A stretch of 63,311 nucleotides of DNA, filler included, from Octopus bimaculoides (GCF_001194135.2; 5 parts of 5 records of this genome joined end to end with filler, not necessarily neighbours in it), one strand, 5' to 3'; positions 1-29,504 are shown, numbered from the whole stretch's first letter. Translations and numbers: made by a program. The notes: generated by a model not told the origin, from the sequence alone.

Positions 1-1507
1 TATATATATATATATATATATATATGTTTATATATGCCTATATGTATGTATATCTTTATATATATGTATGCATTGATGTATTGATGTATAAGTGTGTATG
101 TGTGCATTAAAATATCTGTGCGTATGCATATATGTATAAATGTATAAATGTAAGCGTGAGTGCTAGGTGGAAACTAAAACAATAAATTGTTTTATATTAG
201 TATTATTTTGGTCTCGTGTATGCATACAATTTATTTTTCTATGTCCGTATAGAGTTAGTTTCGTTTATAGGTATCGATAAGTATATGTATGTGACTAAAT
301 GAATAATGGGGTATATATGTAGCTATAGCGTATTTATCGTATTTAGTTTGTTGTTTGGCTCGTTGTTAGTATGTGGGACATTTTGTTTATATTGTATTAT
401 TTTACTCTTTTTCTAAGTATATATTTAGATTATTGATATTTCGCTGAACGTATCGAATTGATTTTGTTTATCTCCCCTGCATTCTAATAGATTAATAATA
501 TTTAGATTTGAATTAATATATAAAATAAGACTTTAACATAAATAGATACAGATGTGTATGAATTGTATATGTATGTAAATTTTTAAAATATATGTGTACG
601 TGAATATGTATCTGAGTATACGTACATGTGTGTGTAAGTATGTATACATAAATGATAGGAATATGTGTACATATATAAGTATATATAAATATGTATATAT
701 GAACGTGTGTATTGTGCAAAAAATCGGTTATAGAAGGGAATATTTATAGATTTAAATTTATGAGTTTACCTCTTATAAATTGTTTTCGTAAAGCCTACTA
801 GTTCTCACGTGCAACATCTTGCATGTTAAAAACCTATATGGTCTTATGCATCCAAGAAATGTGGTATCGTGCAAATTGATGTAATGTTTGCATTGCTCGA
901 TTAAATGGAGTCGCCTGAAACGGTCGTAATGTACCAATACCTTGGCATCATTCTTACTCATTCACTTCTTATTCATCTTACTTCAAGCTGTGCTGATGTA
1001 ACCGGACTGACTTGGTGACTCAACCTAAGTACGTAATTCAACTGAACCTTAACTATTTCTTACATATATAGTTATATATATAATAAATGTATGTGTTTAG
1101 GGGGAGGGTTATAAGTGTTATAGATTTTCTTTGTATATTCTATATTCCATGATTGAACCCGATGGAATAAGAAGCAAATTTAAAACTAAATAAGTACAGG
1201 TGTCTATTTGGTCATCTAAAGCATTCAAAATGGCCGCAGTCATGCTCTACTTAAGAAATAGAAATCAGTTTGACATGAGCTTCCCTGACAAAAAAGTACA
1301 CATTTTAAATTTAAAAAACAATAGGGATTTTTATAGTGTTAATATTCAACTGGGAACGCTAAGATTTGTATTTTCACTTCTAAATCGGAGCTAACTAGAG
1401 TTAAATTTAAAACTGAAGAGGAAATATTGTTACAAGGACAACGTAACAATGATATGGAGAAATTGTAATATATGAGCTACATTAAACAGATTCAAATATA
1501 TACTCAC

Positions 1508-1658
1508 GGAGGTAAACATGTTCCGAGAAATTTCTTTGTGGCGTTAACGTCTTTAACTCCTTTATAGATGCAGGTGTGAGTCCAGCAAGCCCACCCGTCC
1601 CTGATGATCGTCCATTTTGTGCTTTCAGTAACACATCTGCCATCAACCTTCTTACAAT
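1508..1658 (-). CDS. Secreted Cys-rich protein, copy 1: exon 3, (Y)CKKVDGRCVTESTKWTIIRDGWACWTHTCIYKGVKDVNATKKFLGTCLP(P)
   Basis: Acceptor cataacaacag, donor CC|gtgagt, 151 nt, phase 1-2, open frame. A paralogue of identical length lies at 15094-15244. Confidence 0.85.
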
Positions 1659-1703
1659 CTGTTGTTATGAAAATATATCAATTATTCTATTAAAACTATT
1701 TCT

Positions 1704-1934
1704 TATTTCTTTATTGCCCTCAAGGGGCTAAACATAGAGGGGACAAACAAGGACAGACAAAGGAATTAAGTCGATCACATCGACTCCAATGCGTAACTGG
1801 TACTTAATTTATCGACCCCGAAACGATGAAAGGCAAAGTCGACCTCGGCGGAATTTGAACTCAAAACGTAACGGCAGACGAAATACCGCTAAGCATTTCG
1901 CCCGGCGTGCTAACGTTTCTGCCAGCTCGCCGCC
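1704..1934 (-). mobile_element. tRNA-type SINE, near-consensus copy with 14-bp target-site duplication
   Basis: Member of a family seen repeatedly in the window (GGCGGCGAGCTGGCAGAAACGTTAGCACGCCGGGCGAAATGC...). TSD TTAAAACTATTTCT at 1690-1703 and 1935-1948. Confidence 0.85.
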
Positions 1935-3258
1935 TTAAAACTATTTCTATGACATAATTCAAGTCAGAAAGCTAGAAAAATTCCGATAAACTAATATGCC
2001 CGGCGTGCTAACTATTTTGCCTTCTCATCGTTTCAGTTACTGATATTCTGATATATGTTTAGGTAACGTAAATTGTTATGCGCATTTTTATATTGAGTTC
2101 ATATTCTTAAAATCGGAATAGATTAAAGTAATCGTTTTCATAGTTTGTAGTTCGTTTTAAGGACAGGTAGAAGAGATTTCTGTATCATAAAAGGTATTTG
2201 AAGCCTTATATTATAAGTTGACTTCTTGTTAATCCTAAATTTTCATCATTATATAAATATATTAATTTTTTTAACTTTAATTCTTTTATTACTATAATTA
2301 TTTCTTTACGTATTTGTTCACACCGCCATTCGCTGAGTTTCTAATCTTTGACTTTATAATTTTTCTATAATATATTATTTAAACATACATTTTGCCTGAA
2401 CACCATAAACTGACATCAATATCTCATGGATTTTCTGCCTTTTACATTCAAAGTATGTGTGTTTAATTTATGTCTGGTTATAGAGAATTAGCATTTTATT
2501 GCATCATTTATACATTATATTAAATTCTGATCATTCTAAACAATTATTCTTTAAATATTTAAACGTTCTATCCATTTCTTAATATATTTTTATAGATTAT
2601 ACTTTAATACTTTATATACATTTTACTTATATTTTTTTAAAATTATTTTAAACCTAGTATGGTTTATCCCAATTCTGTCTTTCTGCAGTCCCCTTTATAG
2701 GTTGTTCATTTTTTACTCTCTATCTTCTATCAACTCCTCTATTAATAAAGTATTAGCAACTTACTGCATAACTTAAATAATATTTTATTTCTATTAACTA
2801 TAATCTACTTTTCTTAATTCTTAATCTTAATACTTTATACATTTTACGCCAGTTTCTTTCTATTCTGTACTTCATTCGGAATTTATTTTTCTTATATTTT
2901 CTTTATTTCTCTATTTTCTCTGTTTTTATTTATCTTCAATTCACCTAAGCTATATTCTTTCAAAACGATCAAATGTTGTAACATTCTTGACCATTTTTGT
3001 CTTAAATTCTAAATGCTAGCTTCCTGCTTTAATTTTTCCGGGCACATGTAACCCATTAGATTTCTCCTTCATTTTCATTTCATTTTCATCTTTATGTCTC
3101 ACCATATCACATTCTAAGTCCACTAGAATACGTATACTGGCTAACATGTGATAATTCTGTGATTAAATCACACAATATTTTAAACGACTAATTCCGATTC
3201 TCATATTGTAGTTAATTTCAGATATTTAAACAAACATTCATGTTCGAGATGTGTACAC

Positions 3259-3745
3259 ATGCGCGTGTAGGCAGAAATGTTCATAGGCTGACTGTAAGTA
3301 AGTGATCCTGGAACTGTGAAGTCTTGCATGCGTCCATTTCAGCTTTTCATAATAATGACTGTATTGTTTGTTTTCTTGTTGTCTTTTGTTGTTCAAATCA
3401 ACTGTCATCTGACTATTAAATAGTTGAGACTTCTCTTGAACATGGAGAAAATGTATTACCTCCAGGAAAAAGGTTTATCCCCCAAAGTTATTCACGCTAA
3501 CACGATTGGTACATTAGTGAATGGTGATCCATCTTTATCAACTCATAGTACATAAGTGAGCAGCTGAATTTTAGAGGGGAATAGAGAATAGTAAAGATGA
3601 TCCAAGATCTAGACATCTTGCAACACCCACTACCGACAAATACATTGGTCGTGTTCATCATATGCTGATGGAGAAATGGCGAATGACTATAAATCAAATA
3701 ACCAATGCTATCCGATTTCTGCATGAGATATTTCAGCACCAGAAA
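3259..3745 (+). mobile_element. 3'-truncated mariner remnant, paralogous to 17702-19026
   Basis: Left TIR-like end (...ttcataggctgac) and degenerate transposase N-terminus (atggagaaaat...). It aligns with 17702-18190. Confidence 0.75.
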
Positions 3746-4101
3746 TGCATATCCCATGAGATGTCTCTGCCCACCAGAAACGTTAGTGCATCTGCCAAAA
3801 TGCTTTACGGTATTTAGATGCCTTTTTTACGCACTGAGATTTAGCGCTATTGTGTTGAACATTAAATTTTGTCACTTAAGTTCAATAAACGAAGAATCAG
3901 TCGTTTACTTGGGTTGATATAACCGTCTACGAGTTGGGGTACATCAATACCACAAGCACCACTGGAAGATGGTCAGTAAATAAGAGATATCGAACAAGGC
4001 CTATCCAATTCGAATCAAAGCAAATATAAAACTTCTTTGAGATTTTGATATATCAAAACACGTAGTGAAGAGAGGACACAAAAGTTTGTTTATCAACTTA
4101 C

Positions 4102-4242
4102 ACAAATTTGTTTCATTTACTGTCATTTCACCATCAATCCACTCGCATATTCTCCTGGCACAGGTATCGAACATCTTTTCCACCCATTCTTCTCCGTTAT
4201 TGCGGCAATTACCGTCCACGATACATCCATATCCACGACACA
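4102..4242 (-). CDS. Secreted Cys-rich protein, copy 1: exon 2, (V)CRGYGCIVDGNCRNNGEEWVEKMFDTCARRICEWIDGEMTVNETNL
   Basis: Acceptor ttttatttag, donor T|gtaagt, 141 nt, phase 1-1, open frame. A paralogue at 19935-20069 has the same splice sites and conserved Cys positions. Confidence 0.85.
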
Positions 4243-4689
4243 CTAAATAAAAATACATATATTATGATAATATCTACTCAGCAATATTAGATATTTTACA
4301 ATACAGATTTTTTTTATAAACTAGGAGAAGTAAAGATGGTTCTAATAATATCCAACAGAGATCATATCTTTTACTTCCTTCCAAATCATATATGAAATTC
4401 AGTCGGATCTTTTACCTCTTTACTGGGTCCTGTTTTGGATAAGACAAATACCTGAGAGAAGTATATTGATACCAATTTAATGAACAGATACGTTCCTCTA
4501 CAAAGATTTCCTCTACGTATAGGCGTGATTTGAAAAGACCAAAAACTTTTGGTGTGAAGTGTTGAACCGCATAAAGTATTGGACACTCCGGTATTCAGGT
4601 CTCGGTGTAGGCGTTGTTTGTTGGCTACAATTTGTGAACGCTAAAATATAAAACTAATAATAACAGCGTTTTCTACTGTCCCTAGAAAA

Positions 4690-5850
4690 ACGTTATTTAG
4701 GAACACTAGAAATCAAGAGAGGCATCTTCCAAGAGAAATGCCTGTCCCCACTGATCTTTGTACTGTGCATAGTATCACCAGCACTGAGGAAATAAAAGGC
4801 TGTGTGCGTATTCAAAAGCCGCCAACAAAATGTCAACCACTTCTTTCTCATGGATGACCTCAAACTTTATGGTAAAGATGAATCCCAAGTCAGTTCCATC
4901 GTTGACAAGGTGTATACTTTCAGTGTTAATATCCGAATGGATTTCGGACTGAAAAAAGTGTGGTGTGTTAGTCTTGAAGAGAGGCAAAATCAAATGTACG
5001 GACGGGCTAGCGATTCCATCGGTGGATGTAAAAGAGACGGGCTATAACTAATTGGGGATATTGGAAATGGATAAATTGATGGAGAAAGAAATGACAGAAT
5101 AAATTAAGGTGGAGTAATTGTGTTTACTGAGACTGATCCTTAAGTCGAAATTAAACGGACAGAATAAGATTGAAGCTATCAATACCTAAACGGTTTCACT
5201 CCTTAGATATGGAGCAGCGGTAATCGCACGGACAGCAGATGAACTAAACAGCTTAGATAGAAAGACGAGAAAGTTGCTGACTAGATACGTGATACTCTAT
5301 CCAAAACGTGACACAGACTGTATGCACCAAGAAAAAGAGAGGGAAGAGGAGAGATTGGATGCGAAAACAGCATTAGAACAGAAGAAAACAACATAGTATG
5401 GGTATGTAACAAAATGCACACAACCACTCTTATTTGAAGTAAAAAGGTTAAGATTGTGTAGGATGGACGTTTGTAAACATAAAACAATATACAAGTACGT
5501 GAGAATGAATGAAACTGAAAATAGGTGGATAAAGAAAAGAATTCATGGACATTTTCATAGGGATGTTGAAGATAAGACAGACAGAGAAAATAGATGGCTG
5601 TGGATGACTAAAAGTGATTTAAAACGGAAACGGAGGCTCTAGACTGTACTGCCCAAGAGCAAGCACTATCAACGAATTACATAAAATACAGAATAGAAAA
5701 CACATCAGAAAGTGCTTAGTGCAGAATCTATGGACAACATGGTGAAACCGTATAGTATATTACCAGTCGATATACGCCACTAGCCAGAAAGAATATGAGA
5801 TATATCATGACAATATAGCAAATATTGTCATTGGAGACTTTGCAATGCCA
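4690..5850 (+). mobile_element. R4/Dong-like (restriction-like endonuclease) LINE remnant: RT C-terminal half plus zinc-knuckle region
   Basis: Frameshifted motifs IKRGIFQ..CLSPLIFVLC, NHFFLMDDLKLYGK, ILKSKLNG.NKIEAINT and HGHFHRD...WLWMTKSDLK. Confidence 0.8.
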
Positions 5851-5899
5851 AGGTCAGCGCTCTCATTGATCGCTAAAATAGTAAACACATTTGACCCAA

Positions 5900-7280
5900 A
5901 GTTGTGAGGTTTCTTTTGTCGAAATTAATGACTATGATACTCTAAAACTGAGTATAGACAAAGAATTGAAAGTCACAGATCTTAGAATGTATCGCCGATA
6001 GTATCTCCCCAAAATTAGAATTGATAATAAAACCATATCAATGATAAATAACACGAACCTGGACGTCACAGAACTAATGGGCGTAGAAAGAAACGTCAAT
6101 ATGACCAGGTTAAGGTATATAGTATATGCAGCAGGGTCTGTAACTGCAAAAGACGGTAGATATCCCCTCAAACCCATCCAAACAGACGTACCACCACACA
6201 GACAAGGCCTGTGGATAAATAATATCCAGGAGAAATAGAAAATAAAAGTATGTGTCCATCTTTAACGTTACTAGAAAACAATCAACATTACAAAGCAGCA
6301 ATAAAAGAAAAATACTACGCAAATACAAAATTACAGAACTTTTAATTTATTTCTCGACAAAATCTTTTCCTGTTTCGGCAGTAAGGAGCGCTACAATAAG
6401 CACCTCTCTCGGTGGTGATGTGCCCGCCCGACCCACACCCTCTACCATCTTCCCATATGTTCAATATCTACCCCGCTTCCGTGTTTATAACCACTTCTAA
6501 CCTGTCCTCTTATTCCTCCTGTCGGTCTGAATGGATCATACTAAACTTGCTATGTAAAAAGTCTTCCCGGCCTCCCTGCTTGATCTTCTTTTCCTTTTCC
6601 CTTTATTGTTTTCTATCTCTCCCTTTCTCTCTTCTATTTTGTTGTGAATGCCGAGGTGGTGAGGGAAATTCAGCGCTCATCGCTTATAGAATGCCGCAAT
6701 GGCCTGCGCAAGACCTGACACTCAAGACCGACTCCATCGCCAAACCAACAGGAGAAGAGTGAATAAAGTTGGGTATCTGGCGCCTTCAAATAACCAGTGC
6801 TCCGAGTAGGCTGTACTCGTTAACCTTGGATGGCAAGAAGCCTAGGAGAACGACCACTCTGAGTTCAAATCGAGGGGAGCAAGGCTCCTGCCGCCTTGGA
6901 CGATTACCTTCATAGAAATTGTGGCTTTATAAAAATACCGTTGGTAGCAACCTAAAAGCATACCTCAGCTTTGAGTGAAAATAGCAAGCAGAATAGATAC
7001 CGATAAAGGCGTTAACAGGATTGGAATCAGCGGTGAAGGTACAGCTTTCGGTAGGTGCTCCACTGTGCAGCGTCGTAATCCAGCCACTACTAACCATGCT
7101 ACAAGACACAAGTGGAGTAAACAAGACAACATGATGGTTATGGAGTGTTGCTACCGAAGCACGCCAGTGAATGGAAATGGCATGCTTGTCAAAAGGATAC
7201 AGAAAACAAATGCACAGTGAATGGAAGGCAATGGATCTGTTTGAAATTACTCAACAAAGATTATGTGACGAAGCTCACTG
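5900..7280 (+). mobile_element. N-terminal and 5' UTR fragments of R4/Dong-like LINE(s)
   Basis: LRYIVYAAGSVT...PPH (6041-6238) and TRHKWSKQDNMMVMECCYRS...GYRKQMHSEW (7080-7260) resemble the N-terminal region of R4-type ORFs. A more GC-rich leader lies at 6400-7000. Confidence 0.55.
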
Positions 7281-7532
7281 GATGGGAGTATATTATTAGT
7301 TAAGGGGAATATTTAAAATGTACGGCAACATAGGTTATAATTGAAGTAAATGAAACTATCATAAATAAACAATATATTAACAACAATTTACCAACTTCGA
7401 CATCATTGGATATTTCACACACAGACGCAAGTATATATGTAGACATGTGTGCATGTGTTTCTCTTCTGTATTTAATCATTTAAAGTCTTCTGTATGCATG
7501 CAAGAGAAATTCATTATACACACACACGCACG

Positions 7533-7609
<77 letters not shown>

Positions 7610-7754
7610 TAGTATATACATACACATGTGCATACTATTCGTTCAATGTAAATCAAGTATCGGCAATTGTAACACATTCAAAACGTGAAAAGATTTGCTG
7701 CTCAGGCAATTTCGAAATATATTTTCATATATTTTCATATGACTGGCAACTTAC

Positions 7755-7827
7755 CTTTTCCAGGTTCTGCCATATCAACTGTTAATGCTAATAAAGTCAA
7801 CAAGCAAAAGGAATGTAGTTGTGTCAT
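7755..7827 (-). CDS. Secreted Cys-rich protein, copy 1: first coding exon (signal peptide) MTQLHSFCLLTLLALTVDMAEPGK, phase-1 end
   Basis: On the minus strand the acceptor cttccag is followed by ATCAAT and then ATG at 7827. The frame is open with a hydrophobic core FCLLTLLALTV. The donor G|gtaagt is at 7754. Phase 1 joins in frame to the exon at 4102-4242 (G+TG = Val). Confidence 0.75.
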
Positions 7828-8913
7828 ATTGATCTGGAAGTACAAATGTAATTTGAGGTGATCGAACTAGTAACTGTCTTTTTTTATTTCAAGGAAAAAG
7901 AGGAACAACGCAAAGAGATACGTGAGTGTATGCATTCTATACGCATATATTGGTGAGGCTGTGAGTGTATGTGTGTGTGTTTGTGTGTGTGCGTGCGTAT
8001 GTGTATGTATATATATACACCTATCTGTCTAAATGCATATATATATATACATATATATACATATATACATATACATATACATATACATATACTTATATAT
8101 ATATATATATANNNNNNNNNNNNNNNNNNNNNNNNNNNNNNNNNNNNNNNNNNNNNNNNNNNNNNNNNNNNNNNNNNNNNNNNNNNNNNNNNNNNNNNNN
8201 NNNNNNNNNNNNNNNNNNNNNNNNNNNNNNNNNNNNNNNNNNNNNNNNNNNNNNNNNNNNNNNNNNNNNNNNNNNNNNNNNNNNNNNNNNNNNNNNNNNN
8301 NNNNNNNNNNNNNNNNNNNNNNNNNNNNNNNNNNNNNNNNNNNNNNNNNNNNNNNNNNNNNNNNNNNNNNNNNNNNNNNNNNNNNNNNNNNNNNNNNNNN
8401 NNNNNNNNNNNNNNNNNNNNNNNNNNNNNNNNNNNNNNNNNNNNNNNNNNNNNNNNNNNNNNNNNNNNNNNNNNNNNNNNNNNNNNNNNNNNNNNNNNNN
8501 NNNNNNNNNNNNNNNNNNNNNNNNNNNNNNNNNNNNNNNNNNNNNNNNNNNNNNNNNNNNNNNNNNNNNNNNNNNNNNNNNNNNNNNNNNNNNNNNNNNN
8601 NNNNNNNNNNNNNNNNNNNNNNNNNNNNNNNNNNNNNNNNNNNNNNNNNNNNNNNNNNNNNNNNNNNNNNNNNNNNNNNNNNNNNNNNNNNNNNNNNNNN
8701 NNNNNNNNNNNNNNNNNNNNNNNNNNNNNNNNNNNNNNNNNNNNNNNNNNNNNNNNNNNNNNNNNNNNNNNNNNNNNNNNNNNNNNNNNNNNNNNNNNNN
8801 NNNNNNNNNNNNNNNNNNNNNNNNNNNNNNNNNNNNNNNNNNNNNNNNNNNNNNNNNNNNNNNNNNNNNNNNNNNNATACATACATACATACATACATAC
8901 ATACATACATACA

Positions 8914-8945
<32 letters not shown>

Positions 8946-9556
8946 GTTTTCTTAATGCATTTCCATTTGTTGCTATTTATATGTTATTCTTAGGACTCAA
9001 TGATTCGACGCAATGCATCTTAACTTTACTATGATATTTAATTTTTATAAATAATAGTGTTGCTACTGGATTTAATCTCATTATTAAGACTATTTTCCTA
9101 TCACAATCTCCAATGTTGATATTCGTACCACGACTATTATTGTGGTGATTATTGTTACTAATCATAGTCCACACAGTAACTATATTGCTATATAGTCCAC
9201 ACAGTAACTATATTGCTATATATATATATATATATATATATAAGGATAAGATCGTTTTTTTTTAAATAAAGATCATATCAAGTGGCTAGCATAGGAATAA
9301 AAACCTCAGAGGTAATAATTATTATTAAAATTATAATTAAAGGTATCTAAATGATACCATCATGCTAGAGATAGCAATCAAAACTTGACTTTAAAACCAT
9401 ATCAAATATTCATAGAGCACCAGGAGAGTCAAGTTTTCACTTGCTATTTCTAGCATGATAGTGTCTTTTAGATACCCTTAATTATAATTATANNNNNNNN
9501 NNNNNNNNNNNNNNNNNNNNNNNNNNNNNNNNNNNNNNNNNNNNNNNNNNNNNNNN

Positions 9557-9603
<47 letters not shown>

Positions 9604-9687
9604 AGACAGAGAGAGAGAGAGAGAAAGAGAGAGATAGAGAGAGAAATAGAGAGATACATATATATATATACACACACACAGAGATAA

Positions 9688-9751
<64 letters not shown>

Positions 9752-11639
9752 GGGAGAGAGAGAGAGAAAGAGATGCACAGAAACTAAAAATACAATTAGT
9801 TTAGATCTAGACCTTATAGTTTGTTCTTTACCAATAAAATCAAATCAAAACACTGCCAGGTAACTTTATATTAGGCTCTTTTCGATTTTATGTACTATAA
9901 GAAAGCATTGACGAACAAATAAAAATTTTAAAATCATATCTGAGTTATAATGCAAAACAGTCGTTTAAATATTTCATACAAATTCCATTAAAAAAATTAG
10001 ATACTTTTAGAAGTTCACTTACGTATACCAAAAGGACAAAACTGTGAAGAAATTTAAAAGAATGATGTGTGCCAAAGCGATGAGTATTTATAACTGAATG
10101 TAACACCTCCAATATTAATAAACAGCTGGTGACAATATATCTCAGTCCCAAACCTGAAATGTATAATAATGACATCTTATAAAATACTTGCTGAGAACTA
10201 AAGATATTTTATGGCTCGTAGGGATGTGCAAACAACGGTTTCTTCTTCTGCACCTGAAGTTAAGGAACGGAATAAATAAAGTTTGCCCCAATCGAAACAA
10301 CTCAATAGATAATATCCAAAAGAGATCGATCGATAGATAGATACATATGCGCATGTACAAGCTACGCCAGGTTTTTGAAGACATGTTTCATGAGTTTGAA
10401 TTTTCTTGCTAATACAGGTTTTTAAAGCCTTACATTTCAAGCAACTAATGTAAGACTCGAGATTGTCTCAGCAATTTCAATGGCACGCTACATTAGTTGA
10501 CTTAAAAGCGCAAAATAGTTATAAGGAGATGGCTGCTTGCTGTAAGTTTCTCTTTATTTATTATGTCCCAGACATAATCGATAAAAACATCAGAAAACAT
10601 CAGAAGTCACAATATTCAGTCCATTTGTATCAACATCACACTTCTTCAATTTTCCAAATTTGCGATCATTTTACAATTTACCATTTTTCTGTAAAGAATC
10701 GACACTACACTGCTCAGGAAGCTTATATCTTCTGATATTTTTCTTTCCCACCAAGATAGTTTCTTTCGGGTTTTTTTCCATCAATGTTCTTTTCTCATTT
10801 GATCATCAATACTATTCTTTCGTGGATTACAGCCGGGCCCGTCTCGCTCCACAGTGGAAGACAACCAAGGCGTAGCATCATCCCCATTGGTTCCATTCCT
10901 GTTCATACAGTTATCGTTAGCTATTTTGCTCGGCATTTTCATTTATAAATGAGTTGTATTTTAGCTTACCACCGACGGGTAATTTTATCAAGATATTATC
11001 TCCCGCAAGGTTGCTCACCAAGTTATATCAGTTATTGCTGACCATATGAGAAACAAAAAGGGCATAATTGCTCACAAGAGTATACTGTTGTGAGTGGTGC
11101 AGAGATTATTTAAACGATGAAGGGTTATGATGTATTAAATACAAAAGTGTCAGAATTTATGTTTGACTTCAAGAAAGCTAACCAATGGAGACTAAACTGG
11201 TCATTTTCCTCTTTTAAGTTTGTTTCTCTCCCTGCATCTCTCCCCCACACTCTCTCTTTCTTTCTCTCTATGTCTCTTTCTTTCCCATCTTTGATAAATT
11301 TCAACCCATTAACACATGGACTTCAACCAAACCTAAAAATTCACCTCCCCCTTTTTAGTATGCTGAACGTTTCACCTCCAAATTTTATAATTATAATTAC
11401 TGGACTCTACCCAGTGCTCTATTGGTAGTGTTAATGGCAAGGAGGGAGTAGTAAGAGCCCCTCCACACAGTATATTTCAGTCAACTATCGATGACCTCAC
11501 AGGACAGTTAAAACTTTTCAGTTATTATATAATTAAGATTAATTCTAGGAAAAGGGGTTAAATAAATAGGTAATTAATTATTACGACGTAACGTTTTCAT
11601 TAAGCATTACCTAGAATTATTATCTGTAGTTTTTATTCT

Positions 11640-12300
11640 TTAGTTATCTATGAAGTATAACGTAGAATTCTTACCTGACGTTTTTGTTCTACTTCGCGAA
11701 TGGCAGAATGTGAACCGGTTTTCGTCCCTGTATATTCTGCCTCCTATATCTGGAACGACAGATTTCATTTCCTGTAATAAGTAAAATCTAAACAGGTCGG
11801 TGTCAGGGGCTGAGTTGCTTACACCCATAGTTATGTCAAAGTTATTCATTCTATACTTACGAGTACATATTTTGTTACTGCAAGAGATTATTGTTTTCCT
11901 AGACGTCTGCGTCCTTCGTAGACGCGTGCGTCCTTTCTAGAAAAAAGATGTGTGTTTCATGGCGAGGATTAAGGCCTTAATGTGAAGTATAGGTTTGATA
12001 AATATGTACAATTAGTCAATATCTATGTGTATAAATTCAGTGTGTATTTTGTAAAATAACTTCTTAAACCATTCAATTACGACAGTAGTGTACGACCTAA
12101 GGTCAATATTTCCATGGTTCCTAAATTTTGGGAGCGTTTTATCCATAATCGATTTACCACTTGACCAATATTCGACTTGGATGAGGTAATCAATCTAGTG
12201 CCTATGTCAGAGGTGAGGAATCTCTTTAAGTCTGCAGACCGAATTAACTTGAATTGTGATCTAACAAGGCAGCAACAAAAGTTTCATTATAATTTTTTAA
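11640..12300 (-). mobile_element. Penelope-like element RT remnant
   Basis: Frameshifted motifs SNIGQVVKSIMDK, VIEWFKK, FIHIDI and NNFDITMG...RIYRD, typical of Penelope-like RTs. Confidence 0.7.
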
Positions 12301-12499
12301 ATTCCATATTTTGTAATAAATCTCAGAACTAAAGAGGAATGACTAATTTGAAATTTTTTTTTCATATTTTTAAAATGTAGCATTAAGGTTCGAAGTTTAA
12401 GCTGATCTTCTAGACGGGCGTCCATAATTTGCGACCTGAAGGGACCTTGATTTTGTTTACGTATGAAAATATAAATTCGCAGCAATATGTCGAATAGAA

Positions 12500-25269: not shown

Positions 25270-25570
25270 AACGCATCATCCAAAATACTACCTGGATTTA
25301 CATGGGATTATATCTAAGGGCCTATACCTTCATGGAAATACGGACCAACCTCCATAACCCCTGGAAAAAAGAGATCTGTGAACTTTATTCTCCTGTCTGT
25401 TTTCTTCTATCTTATTTTATTTATTCTTTTATTTTATTCCTTAAACTCTGTAAATTTCCCTGTCTGAAACTTTCATAATACTCACCTTGTCTCTGATGAA
25501 GGAATACCCAATGTATGGACATGCTAGCTTATCACTTGGGATATCCCAGAAACAGATGTAAGACTTGAAA
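25270..25570 (+). mobile_element. Penelope-like 3' fragment (GIY-YIG C-terminal region and 3' end)
   Basis: Degenerate FTWDYI...SWKY...TPGKKR followed by ctgatgaagg...cccagaaacag, an ending typical of Penelope-like elements. Confidence 0.45.
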
Positions 25571-25581
25571 TTTACACTAAC

Positions 25582-25621
<40 letters not shown>

Positions 25622-25987
25622 NNNNNNNNNNNNNNNNNNNNNNNNNNNNNNNNNNNNNNNNNNNNNNNNNNNNNNNNNNNNNNNNNNNNNNNNNNNNNNN
25701 NNNNNNNNNNNNNNNNNNNNNNNNNNNNNNNNNNNNNNNNNNNNNNNNNNNNNNNNNNNNNNNNNNNNNNNNNNNNNNNNNNNNNNNNNNNNNNNNNNNN
25801 NNNNNNNNNNNNNNNNNNNNNNNNNNNNNNNNNNNNNNNNNNNNNNNNNNNNNNNNNNNNNNNNNNNNNNNNNNNNNNNNNNNNNNNNNNNNNNNNNNNN
25901 NNNNNNNNNNNNNNNNNNNNNNNNNNNNNNNNNNNNNNNNNNNNNNNNNNNNNNNNNNNNNNNNNNNNNNNNNNNNNNNNNNNNNNN

Positions 25988-27300
25988 CAGATAACTAGGG
26001 TAAGTGTACATCTGAAATTTCATTTTGAAGGTGATCTTTAAAAAATGATAGCTTTTTTTCCGAAATGCTTCAATTTGTTGCCACATGTCATAAATTGATT
26101 TTGTTTTACCCTGCAAATAAATATTCAAGTCATTTTGCTTTGACATGATATCTCAAAGAAATAGAAATATTCCTATAGAAATATTCGTCCAATAATTCAC
26201 ATTGTTCATTCCTTTCTTTATAAAATTTTCTTATCTACCCGCGTAAACTTGAAAAGTTTACTCACATCTGTGCTTGCGATAGCCAACGAATTTTAGAATG
26301 CACACTGAATACCTTATTGTCTAATCGCAGCATGTTACGAAACTGACGATGCATTGTCGCATCGGCAAGATATATAGTTAACAATATTTATGACATTCTG
26401 CGAAGTGTCACATAAATGGTCGATTTAGCACAAAGGTTTTGCTGGTGCAATACACAATGAAAAGAATTGAGAACATCTGGATCTGATACGACATTTTGTT
26501 TATCTGGGCAATAAATCCTACATGATTTCCATTCACAGAAGGAGCACCGTCTGTGTATACGCTAACTAAATTATCCAAATTCAACCCAACTTCTAGACAT
26601 TCATCCTGAAAGATTGTGAGGATATATATCCCTCGTGTTCCTCCCGTAAGAGTACCCAAAGCCAGTAATTTTTCGTATTAAATAAAATCTTCTGTTGTGG
26701 CACAACCGAAATATGAAACATGCGCCGTGTCAGCAGTATCAGTTGATTCATCCAGAGCGATTGTATAATATGAATTTTCATTTTGAAGTATAATGTGAAG
26801 TTGTTCTGTTACATCGAGGGCCAATTCATGTCGCTGACCTGTTATGGTTCTCCTTGAAAGAGGTAATTGGTTTTACTTCCAAACCTTGTCGGGATCTAAG
26901 CATCCAACGACTTCAACAATACTCTTTCACAATTTCAACATGGCTGAAAGGCTTACGTTTTTTTTTTTTTACCTCGGTGTATAAGCAACTTTATAAGCAA
27001 CTTCTGTGACATAATTTGCAGATTTCGCCACGTCTTAAATAGTTGTCTCTGCTTTTGTCTTCAATTTTTTCATTTATTGCAGAGCAACCTTTCATGCTTC
27101 CCCTCTAATTTGAAATATTTATTATTTTCAAGTGTCGTATAGTGTTGATGTGCGTTGAACGTCTTTAATGTCGTTATCTCAGCAACACAAAGCAAACAAA
27201 TCATTTTTCTCTTTCGAAGACAATTAGTTATACTGCAGTTCCCAATCTTCATTAAAGACCCCGTTTTTCTTACTGGATCATACTCTTAATCGTTTTTCAC
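25988..27300 (-). mobile_element. hAT (Charlie/SPIN, GTF2IRD2-like) transposase remnant, unit 2
   Basis: MICLLC...TFNAHQHY (zinc-binding N-terminus), LVSVYTDGAPSV.G and MSKQNDLNIYLQGK...QIEAF. Confidence 0.8.
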
Positions 27301-27928
27301 ATTATTGTTTCTTTAAAATTTAAACAATTATGAGTCTAAATTGACGCTGTGTAACTATTGTCTCTTTTTGTAGCAAGTCAAATACATCACTATCACAAGT
27401 GGACGAAATACTGACATACTCGCAAATCATGCGACGCACGTTCTAGTCATGTTGCTAGATAGTGCCATTACTTATTTTACAGTCAATTTTAGTTTTTTAA
27501 TAAAGTAGCCATTATAATTTCAAAATAATGTCAATGTTTGAAGCCATATATATATATATATATATAATTTAGAGAAAAAACCCCACAATTATTGAATTCA
27601 TCCATGAAACTCCACAATCACATATAGAAAAATTTAATAACTAAATACACTAGAAGTATTAAATATTAAGAGTAAAAATGACTACACGTGTTTCATAAAC
27701 ATATTTTCAAATAGAAAATAAATAAAAATCAATATATAGATATGTGTATGTATGTATGTATGTATGTATGTATGTATGTGCAATCCGTGTGGGTGTTTTT
27801 TCAAAACACTGTCTGGTTTAAAAAGCCACATCAGACGCCATGAAAGGGCTAAGGTGTAGGTGCAGGAGGTGGTCAAACTCTGTTTAAGGAGTAGACAACC
27901 ACCATGTATGTATGTGTATATATATATA

Positions 27929-29350: not shown

Positions 29351-29504
29351 TGTATGTATGCATGCATGAATGGTGAGAGAGAGAGAGAGAAGAAAACATT
29401 CATACATAGACATACAGTGATGGAGCTAAAGAAAGAGAATACAGGGAGCAAAGATAGGAATAGTTCTTGTTCAGAATTGACAATTAGGAGTAATTCATAA
29501 AATT

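Follow-up and report, generated by a model that had tools for sequence, protein, structure and literature searches.

The subject of the present study is a window of genomic DNA from Octopus bimaculoides (GCF_001194135.2; 63,311 nucleotides as a whole, filler included), in which the analysed piece comprises 27,928 bases with five runs of N. This piece consists of two adjacent units arranged head to tail—unit A, covering approximately 1–14.4 kb, and unit B, covering approximately 14.5–27.9 kb—and these two are, with a probability that we would place at roughly 0.88, neighbouring units of a multi-copy octopus tandem array carrying a predicted fast-evolving gene for a secreted cysteine-rich protein. 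The initial annotation of the region had proposed an ancient tandem duplication, recognizable from a series of collinear, like-oriented homologous blocks and later than the insertion of the mariner and hAT transposons found within it.

The blocks were found by self-BLASTN with the low-complexity filter on, and cross-checked by a more sensitive search of the A half against the B half. The former yielded 19 hits, seven of them forming a strictly collinear + / + series, and the latter recovered the identical blocks; a tblastx comparison of A with B was dominated by microsatellite translations. In the order A / B, the seven pairs are 1467–1815 / 15053–15409 (block 1), 3148–3736 / 17582–18205 (block 2), 3770–4329 / 19609–20163 (block 3), 5407–5839 / 20848–21285 (block 4), 8941–9186 / 24400–24684 (block 5, an AT-rich, non-coding intergenic block of 80% identity), 12818–13381 / 25994–26564 (block 6) and 13380–13693 / 26791–27115 (block 7). 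Their E-values range from 1e-47 to 1e-157, and together they link 1467–13693 with 15053–27115 over about 3 kb in total at 78–83% identity, the offset from A to B drifting from 13.2 to 15.8 kb; the unit period is approximate owing to the gap lengths. The seven-block duplication described initially is thus real, its coordinates agreeing with the present ones within about 20 bp and, for the exon 2 pair (4102–4242 / 19935–20069), exactly; the order and orientation reported for the two units are borne out as well, the collinearity being perfect despite the interrupted diagonal. Block 1 had rightly been cut at 1703 / 15299, since the part beyond (1705–1815 / 15300–15409) is non-orthologous and pairs a young A-specific short interspersed element (SINE) with an old SINE. 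The homology between A and B covers sequence that does not derive from transposable elements (TEs), i.e. exons, intron 2 and the AT-rich spacer, together with the flanks of the mariner insertion, and the Kimura two-parameter distance (K2P) per block, calculated after global realignment, is homogeneous at 0.19–0.26, for TE-derived and other blocks alike.

Concerning the gene, blocks 1 and 3 contain minus-strand open frames, the canonical splice sites of which are kept in both A and B. Copy A looks complete. Its exon 1 (7827–7755, minus strand) consists of an ATG, a signal-peptide-like sequence, MTQLHSFCLLTLLALTVDMAEPGK, and a GTAAGT donor in phase 1; it was the single credible candidate in A in a scan upstream of exon 2 for an ATG with a hydrophobic stretch and a phase-1 donor, and it matches exon 1 of both an annotated paralogue and a further copy, E, from a second locus (see below). 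Exon 2 (4242–4102, minus strand), symmetric with phases 1-1, supplies five of the cysteines, and exon 3 (1658–1504, minus strand), homologous to exon 3 of the paralogue, starts in phase 1 and encodes (Y)CKKVDG...GTCLPP followed by TGA. In copy B, both exon 2 (20069–19935, minus strand; with an in-frame 6-nt deletion relative to A) and exon 3 (15244–15090, minus strand; an open reading frame (ORF) followed by TGA) are intact, while the exon-2-proximal part of intron 2 of A (3770–4101, minus strand) is homologous to B 19609–19934 and to unit C of the second locus. The exon 3 acceptor CAACAG is kept in A, B, C and a still further copy, D, and the exon 3 TGA overlaps a conserved GTGAGT donor in A and B. 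When spliced, exons 2 and 3 encode 97 amino acids (aa) in A and 95 aa in B, the two sequences sharing 69% identity and 10 invariant cysteines, with a single indel that is in-frame and two codons long. The gene product is accordingly predicted, from the sequence, to be a secreted 10-cysteine protein built of a signal-peptide exon and two cysteine-rich exons, which in A would count approximately 120 aa, about 100 of them in the mature form.

As a separate observation, the motif GTGAGTATAT directly after exon 3 is kept in all four copies (1497–1512, 15083–15098, and ~18625–18640 and ~2140 of the second locus, L001); in A, B and C it shares bases with the stop codon, in D the stop precedes it, and the NCBI model of C splices there to a fourth exon. 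The cysteine spacing gave a hint that the exon 2 and exon 3 modules could be an internal repeat, but hhalign did not support it (E 0.08).

When the two exon 3 peptides were submitted to an exhaustive profile search, five hits were obtained, one of which is a genuine homologue (E 2e-12), the other four being repetitive, unrelated proteins. The homologue, annotated as 'uncharacterized protein LOC128248175 [Octopus bimaculoides]' and designated here P0002, counts 129 aa, is alone in its cluster and is encoded on CM046606.1 at ~107.0 Mb. Its exon junctions coincide with those predicted for A, so that the initial exon calls agree with the NCBI gene model, and exon 1 of A is validated because P0002 begins MTQLLPSCLLILVALTDVMPNPK. 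P0002 resembles A in its three coding exons, intron phases, 10 cysteines and similar signal peptide (MTQLLPSCLL...), its identity per exon being 58–62% to A and 42–43% to B; its unit, too, resembles those of the window, intron 2 containing a mariner and the spacer a hAT. It differs in having a short fourth coding exon (QVIEDTQNKTA), reached in the gene model from the GTGAGT donor, and in lacking the Dong/R4-like long interspersed element (LINE) in intron 1. A counterpart of this fourth exon was searched for near A and B and not found. A word-indexed protein search with the spliced A protein found no homologue, and a PDB sequence search gave no hit. In Pfam, the family DUF7478 (PF24290) was matched below its gathering threshold of 27, with 23.4 bits (E 8e-5) and 21.8 bits for A and 17.1 bits (E 0.007) for B; the weak match extends over both cysteine-rich exons of A, and of B, whereas the first ~70 profile positions are without counterpart. 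P0002 itself gave no hit to DUF7478, and a literature search on this family found no papers. AlphaFold modelling of P0002 with the exon fragments was poor (predicted local distance difference test score, pLDDT, of 41).

The locus of P0002 (L001; CM046606.1:106,998,605–107,028,227) is distinct from the window and exhibits 70–84% identity to it over the same blocks. It contains the full unit C, a diverged exon 3 of the upstream copy D (~2000–2140), which stops directly after the last cysteine, and exon 1 of the downstream copy E (29414–29497). The periods within L001 amount to 16.5 and 19.4 kb, and the C–E spacer is homologous to that between B and A. The presence of the flanking partial copies D and E therefore indicates that the duplication was not an isolated one and that a tandem array is involved. 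The duplication proposed at first, with more copies considered possible to the left of the window, holds for A and B as a tandem pair, and the pair belongs to a larger array, of which L001 shows one full unit and parts of two more. A three-way comparison of A, B and C over 1972 sites gave 142, 164 and 155 private changes, respectively, i.e. a star-like picture with approximately equal distances; when D was taken as outgroup, the informative sites were divided 5/5/3, giving no resolution of the rooting of A, B and C. The similar branch lengths and this division therefore suggest that A, B and C arose in quick succession, D being older (p about 0.35). For octopus TEs, a calibration is available in which per-lineage distances of 0.09 and 0.2 correspond to ~25 and ~56 million years, respectively, the TE classes found in the window having been described there, too (PMC13282606); the pairwise K2P of ~0.22 would place, as a rough estimate, the duplications at about 30 million years ago.

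A relative chronology is offered by the TEs, since the mariner, the hAT remnant and an old SINE are older than the duplications. The mariner, the label of which is confirmed by matches to PF01359/PF17906 proteins (E 1e-14), is represented in A by its 5' part only (3263–3736, plus strand, ~470 bp) and in B by its full length of 1323 bp (17703–19025, plus strand) with 31-nt imperfect terminal inverted repeats (TIRs) and a decayed ORF; unit C carries the whole element, too. As claimed initially, the insertion site is shared: the intron-2 sequence at the 5' end in A (3148–3262, plus strand) matches B 17582–17702, the 113 aligned nucleotides before the TIR being 82% identical and the proximal 60 nt conserved also in C, and the 3' flank (19026–19369) is common to B and C at 82%. 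From A, ~1.46 kb, comprising the 3' part of the mariner and its flank, was later deleted. It should be noted that the ends are decayed, with a TA possible on both sides, although not clean. Based on the flanks common to the units, the mariner therefore predates A, B and C. The Buster-type hAT remnant occupies 12045–13729 in A (minus strand; 12818–13693 pairing with B and 12045–13693 with L001) and 25988–27469 in B (minus strand), where its low side is cut by the gap 25622–25987, leaving A 12045–12817, which matches L001, without an assembled B counterpart. Its translation matches GTF2IRD2B-like and Buster3-like proteins carrying PF14291 and PF05699 with an E-value of 1e-68, the homology taking in the DUF4371 and hAT dimerisation regions, in accord with its original label as a hAT. 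In A, B and C alike, the remnant is found at one relative position and in one orientation, and a local duplication younger than both the mariner and the hAT is corroborated by the equivalent relative place and orientation of the two in the L001 unit. The old SINE remnant, located in A at 1956–2050 (minus strand) and internally deleted there, adjoins exon 3 on its upstream side in all of A, B, C and D.

Later than the duplications are the 1.46-kb deletion and the young SINE-like insertion in A as well as the pogo element and the extra SINEs in B. The young SINE (1704–1936, plus strand) is flanked by a perfect 14-bp target-site duplication, TTAAAACTATTTCT (1690–1703 and 1937–1950), and is 90% identical to another copy in L001. 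The SINEs specific to B are located in intron 2 (19398–19607, plus strand) and at 14857–15009; at least five SINE copies are present, and no tRNA or Rfam match was found. The pogo/Tigger fragment, present in unit B only (22605–23226, plus strand; DDE_1 with E 2e-12 and HTH_Tnp_Tc5), sits where exon 1 of B would be expected, and is the only TE recognized in the Pfam scan of the concatenated plus-strand six-frame ORFs and the single TE ORFs, the minus strand not having been scanned likewise.

With regard to selection, the ratios of non-synonymous to synonymous distance (dN/dS), obtained by the Nei-Gojobori method with Fisher p-values, are 2.49 for B–C (p = 0.009) and 2.32 for A–C (p = 0.048). 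Between B and C, the non-synonymous distance is 0.306 vs 0.136 in the adjacent intron (p = 1e-6). In a neutral simulation with the same number of substituted sites, the open frame and the 10 cysteines were kept together in 0.1% of the trials (P = 0.001), and therefore the scaffold is constrained, the other residues being neutral or adaptive. By analogy, such a pattern would typically mark an extracellular ligand, defence or toxin-type protein that is diversifying. Small disulfide-rich secreted proteins are known from tandem families that diversify rapidly, for example venom or immune peptide arrays, and the octopus array resembles these families in the signal peptide on its own exon, the invariant cysteines, dN at or above dS elsewhere, and the tandem duplication. 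A more far-reaching proposal, put forward here tentatively and with the odds somewhat against it, is that the array represents an undescribed octopus-restricted family of secreted 10-cysteine proteins under diversifying selection, with amino-acid change of up to twice the intron rate on an invariant disulfide scaffold, most members of which, A and B included, are unannotated, and that it might constitute a new class of venom, immune, chemosensory or reproductive effectors.

There are, nevertheless, several observations that weigh against the interpretation of A and B as units of a tandem array. About a quarter of each unit aligns (~3 kb of ~12 kb) and the diagonal is broken, so that of the dot-plot pattern anticipated initially the collinear series is present, but the continuous diagonal is absent. 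The gene was likewise proposed to have been duplicated, which holds for exons 2 and 3, found in both copies, but not for exon 1, for which nucleotide, protein and signal-peptide-plus-donor searches were all negative in the assembled sequence of B; copy B looks to have lost exon 1 or to have it unassembled, and it may be a recent pseudogene. For the A–B pair taken alone, the dN/dS of 1.41 is not significantly above 1 (p = 0.25) and dN equals the intron rate (0.171 vs 0.191 in the adjacent intron). The block distances are, moreover, mosaic, B and C being closest in the mariner and intron-2 blocks (0.126–0.136 vs 0.23–0.26 elsewhere) and farthest in exon 3 and the hAT, and therefore A and B need not be direct duplication partners. 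Exchange between the units may have taken place, or the distances hint at uneven rates.

This mosaic is also what favours the most serious of the other explanations, i.e. that the duplications are much older and that the 20% divergence has been held low by gene conversion or unequal exchange. A 109-bp segment with 94.5% identity between A and C points in the same direction, but over most blocks the divergence is even, at ~0.2, long near-identical tracts are missing, and the unit-specific TE insertions have not been homogenized, which makes a much greater age unlikely. The segment itself (2482–2590; L001 17531–17639) is an AT-rich part of intron 2 that B lacks and that lies among sequence of ~80% identity; it may represent a conversion tract, some conserved element or a repeat of young age.

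In the array interpretation, the ancestral unit already contained a minus-strand gene with three coding exons, the intron 2 of which carried both a mariner and a SINE, and, in the spacer, a Buster-type hAT. It was then copied several times in quick succession, presumably by unequal crossing-over or by replication-based tandem duplication. Afterwards each unit was remodelled separately, as SINEs, LINEs and pogo elements inserted, sequence was deleted and microsatellites grew, a process that broke the diagonal into blocks. Throughout, the coding exons have stayed open with all the cysteines kept, while the other residues have changed at or above the neutral rate.

It may alternatively be supposed that only the exon pairs are paralogous, and that the mariner, LINE and hAT blocks are independent, accidentally collinear insertions. 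This receives some support from SINEs at unrelated positions in the window, which are also ~80% identical, indicating that family-level similarity can mimic the unit divergence, as well as from the LINE. The fragment of this Dong/R4-like element in intron 1 of A (5407–5839, plus strand; with a reverse transcriptase (RT) motif further 5', at 4802–5047) pairs with B 20848–21285, a portion of a longer 3' part (20848–21888, plus strand) that ends in an (AAT)n tail (21809–21888) and is preceded by an (AAT)n array (20430–20857). The overlap of ~430 bp has no testable common flank and the LINE is absent from C, so that the initial caution about two independent insertions was justified here; divergence and position fit shared ancestry, but the two may have inserted independently. 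The assignment to the Dong/R4 class is based on motifs—an FxDD RT motif (RVT_1 with a weak E of 0.066) and KPDIV...D seen by eye—and on the (AAT)n tail of B, the element having no significant database match. Against accidental collinearity as a whole stand the non-TE flank of the mariner common to A, B and C, the equal place and orientation of the mariner and hAT in three units, the equal K2P of TE and non-TE blocks, and the collinearity of intron 2 and the AT-rich spacer, which are neither coding nor derived from TEs. For the mariner and the hAT, independent insertion is therefore largely refuted, and the explanation in its full extent is very improbable. It can be added that (AAT)n arrays lie on either side of the B LINE, a situation to be expected where a Dong-type element has inserted into a TAA microsatellite, whereas A is without such arrays.

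Equally improbable is a single gene, driven from one first exon, in the transcript of which the exon 2–3 pairs of B and A would serve as alternative cassettes or form successive domains. The lack of an own exon 1 in the assembled sequence of B would agree with it, as would the GTGAGT donor after exon 3, kept in A, B, C and D and used in the P0002 model toward the small fourth exon. Splicing of B exon 3 to A exon 2 would, however, break the frame, since exon 2 starts in phase 1, whereas the end of exon 3 is in phase 2 or is a stop codon; moreover, between the two pairs A possesses an ATG and a signal-peptide exon of its own, the annotated paralogue P0002 is a stand-alone protein of 129 aa, and a decayed hAT together with ~7 kb of spacer separates the units.

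Finally, the second unit is hardly an assembly artefact (such as a tandemly placed haplotig or an error in scaffolding over the N gaps), despite the five gaps in the region, all at microsatellites, and the short-read-based look of the assembly, because the units differ by ~20% and in TE content, far above haplotype divergence, the A and B proteins are merely 69% identical, the independent chromosome-scale locus L001 has the same repeated architecture, and the block order is preserved over all the gaps. Microsatellites flank all five N runs, the gap 20757–20766 lying within a single (AAT)n array, and neither the exons nor the aligned blocks are interrupted by gaps. Long 'ORFs' that span the gaps are translated N. 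Sized gaps next to 10-N gaps characterize both the window and L001, which is in keeping with an origin of the window, too, in O. bimaculoides, the species of the sole homologue.

Several further features of the window deserve mention. The segments 5840–8940 (3101 bp, 765 N included) and 21286–24399 (3114 bp) are of near-equal lengths with no detectable common sequence, this match in length being probably a coincidence. At the junction of A and B, inverted repeats of ~81% identity are found ~400 bp apart (13757–13886 / 14224–14313); the homology of A to B and C ends just short of them, and they may delimit a TIR element specific to A. Among the long intergenic blocks common to the window and L001, 9781–10562 (L001 25746–26527) shows the highest conservation (84% over 787 bp). 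It is located ~2–2.7 kb upstream of exon 1, has no assembled counterpart in B, and its ORFs are without a TE signature. A 167-bp imperfect palindrome (9326–9492; 76% self-complementary) abuts the gap 9493–9556. ARAGORN and Rfam found no RNA genes.

With respect to what is known about cephalopods, coleoid genomes contain multi-megabase tandem arrays as well as arrays of clade-specific genes without similarity to known proteins (PMC9068888). The octopus array resembles these clade-specific arrays in the head-to-tail arrangement in a single orientation, the lineage-restricted protein without a recognizable domain and the TE-rich spacer; it is unlike them in being small, with five units seen, periods of 13–19 kb and one annotated member. 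The octopus gene family is not named in that source, as far as it was covered here.

Tandem duplication is routine, especially in octopus genomes, and the structural finding as such confirms an expectation. The window adds, however, two unannotated members to a family with a single annotated representative, together with a full predicted gene model for copy A, and the distinction of shared from private TE insertions yields a clean relative chronology of the array. With its invariant cysteines and a dN above the neutral rate, the family becomes a candidate for lineage-specific adaptive evolution.

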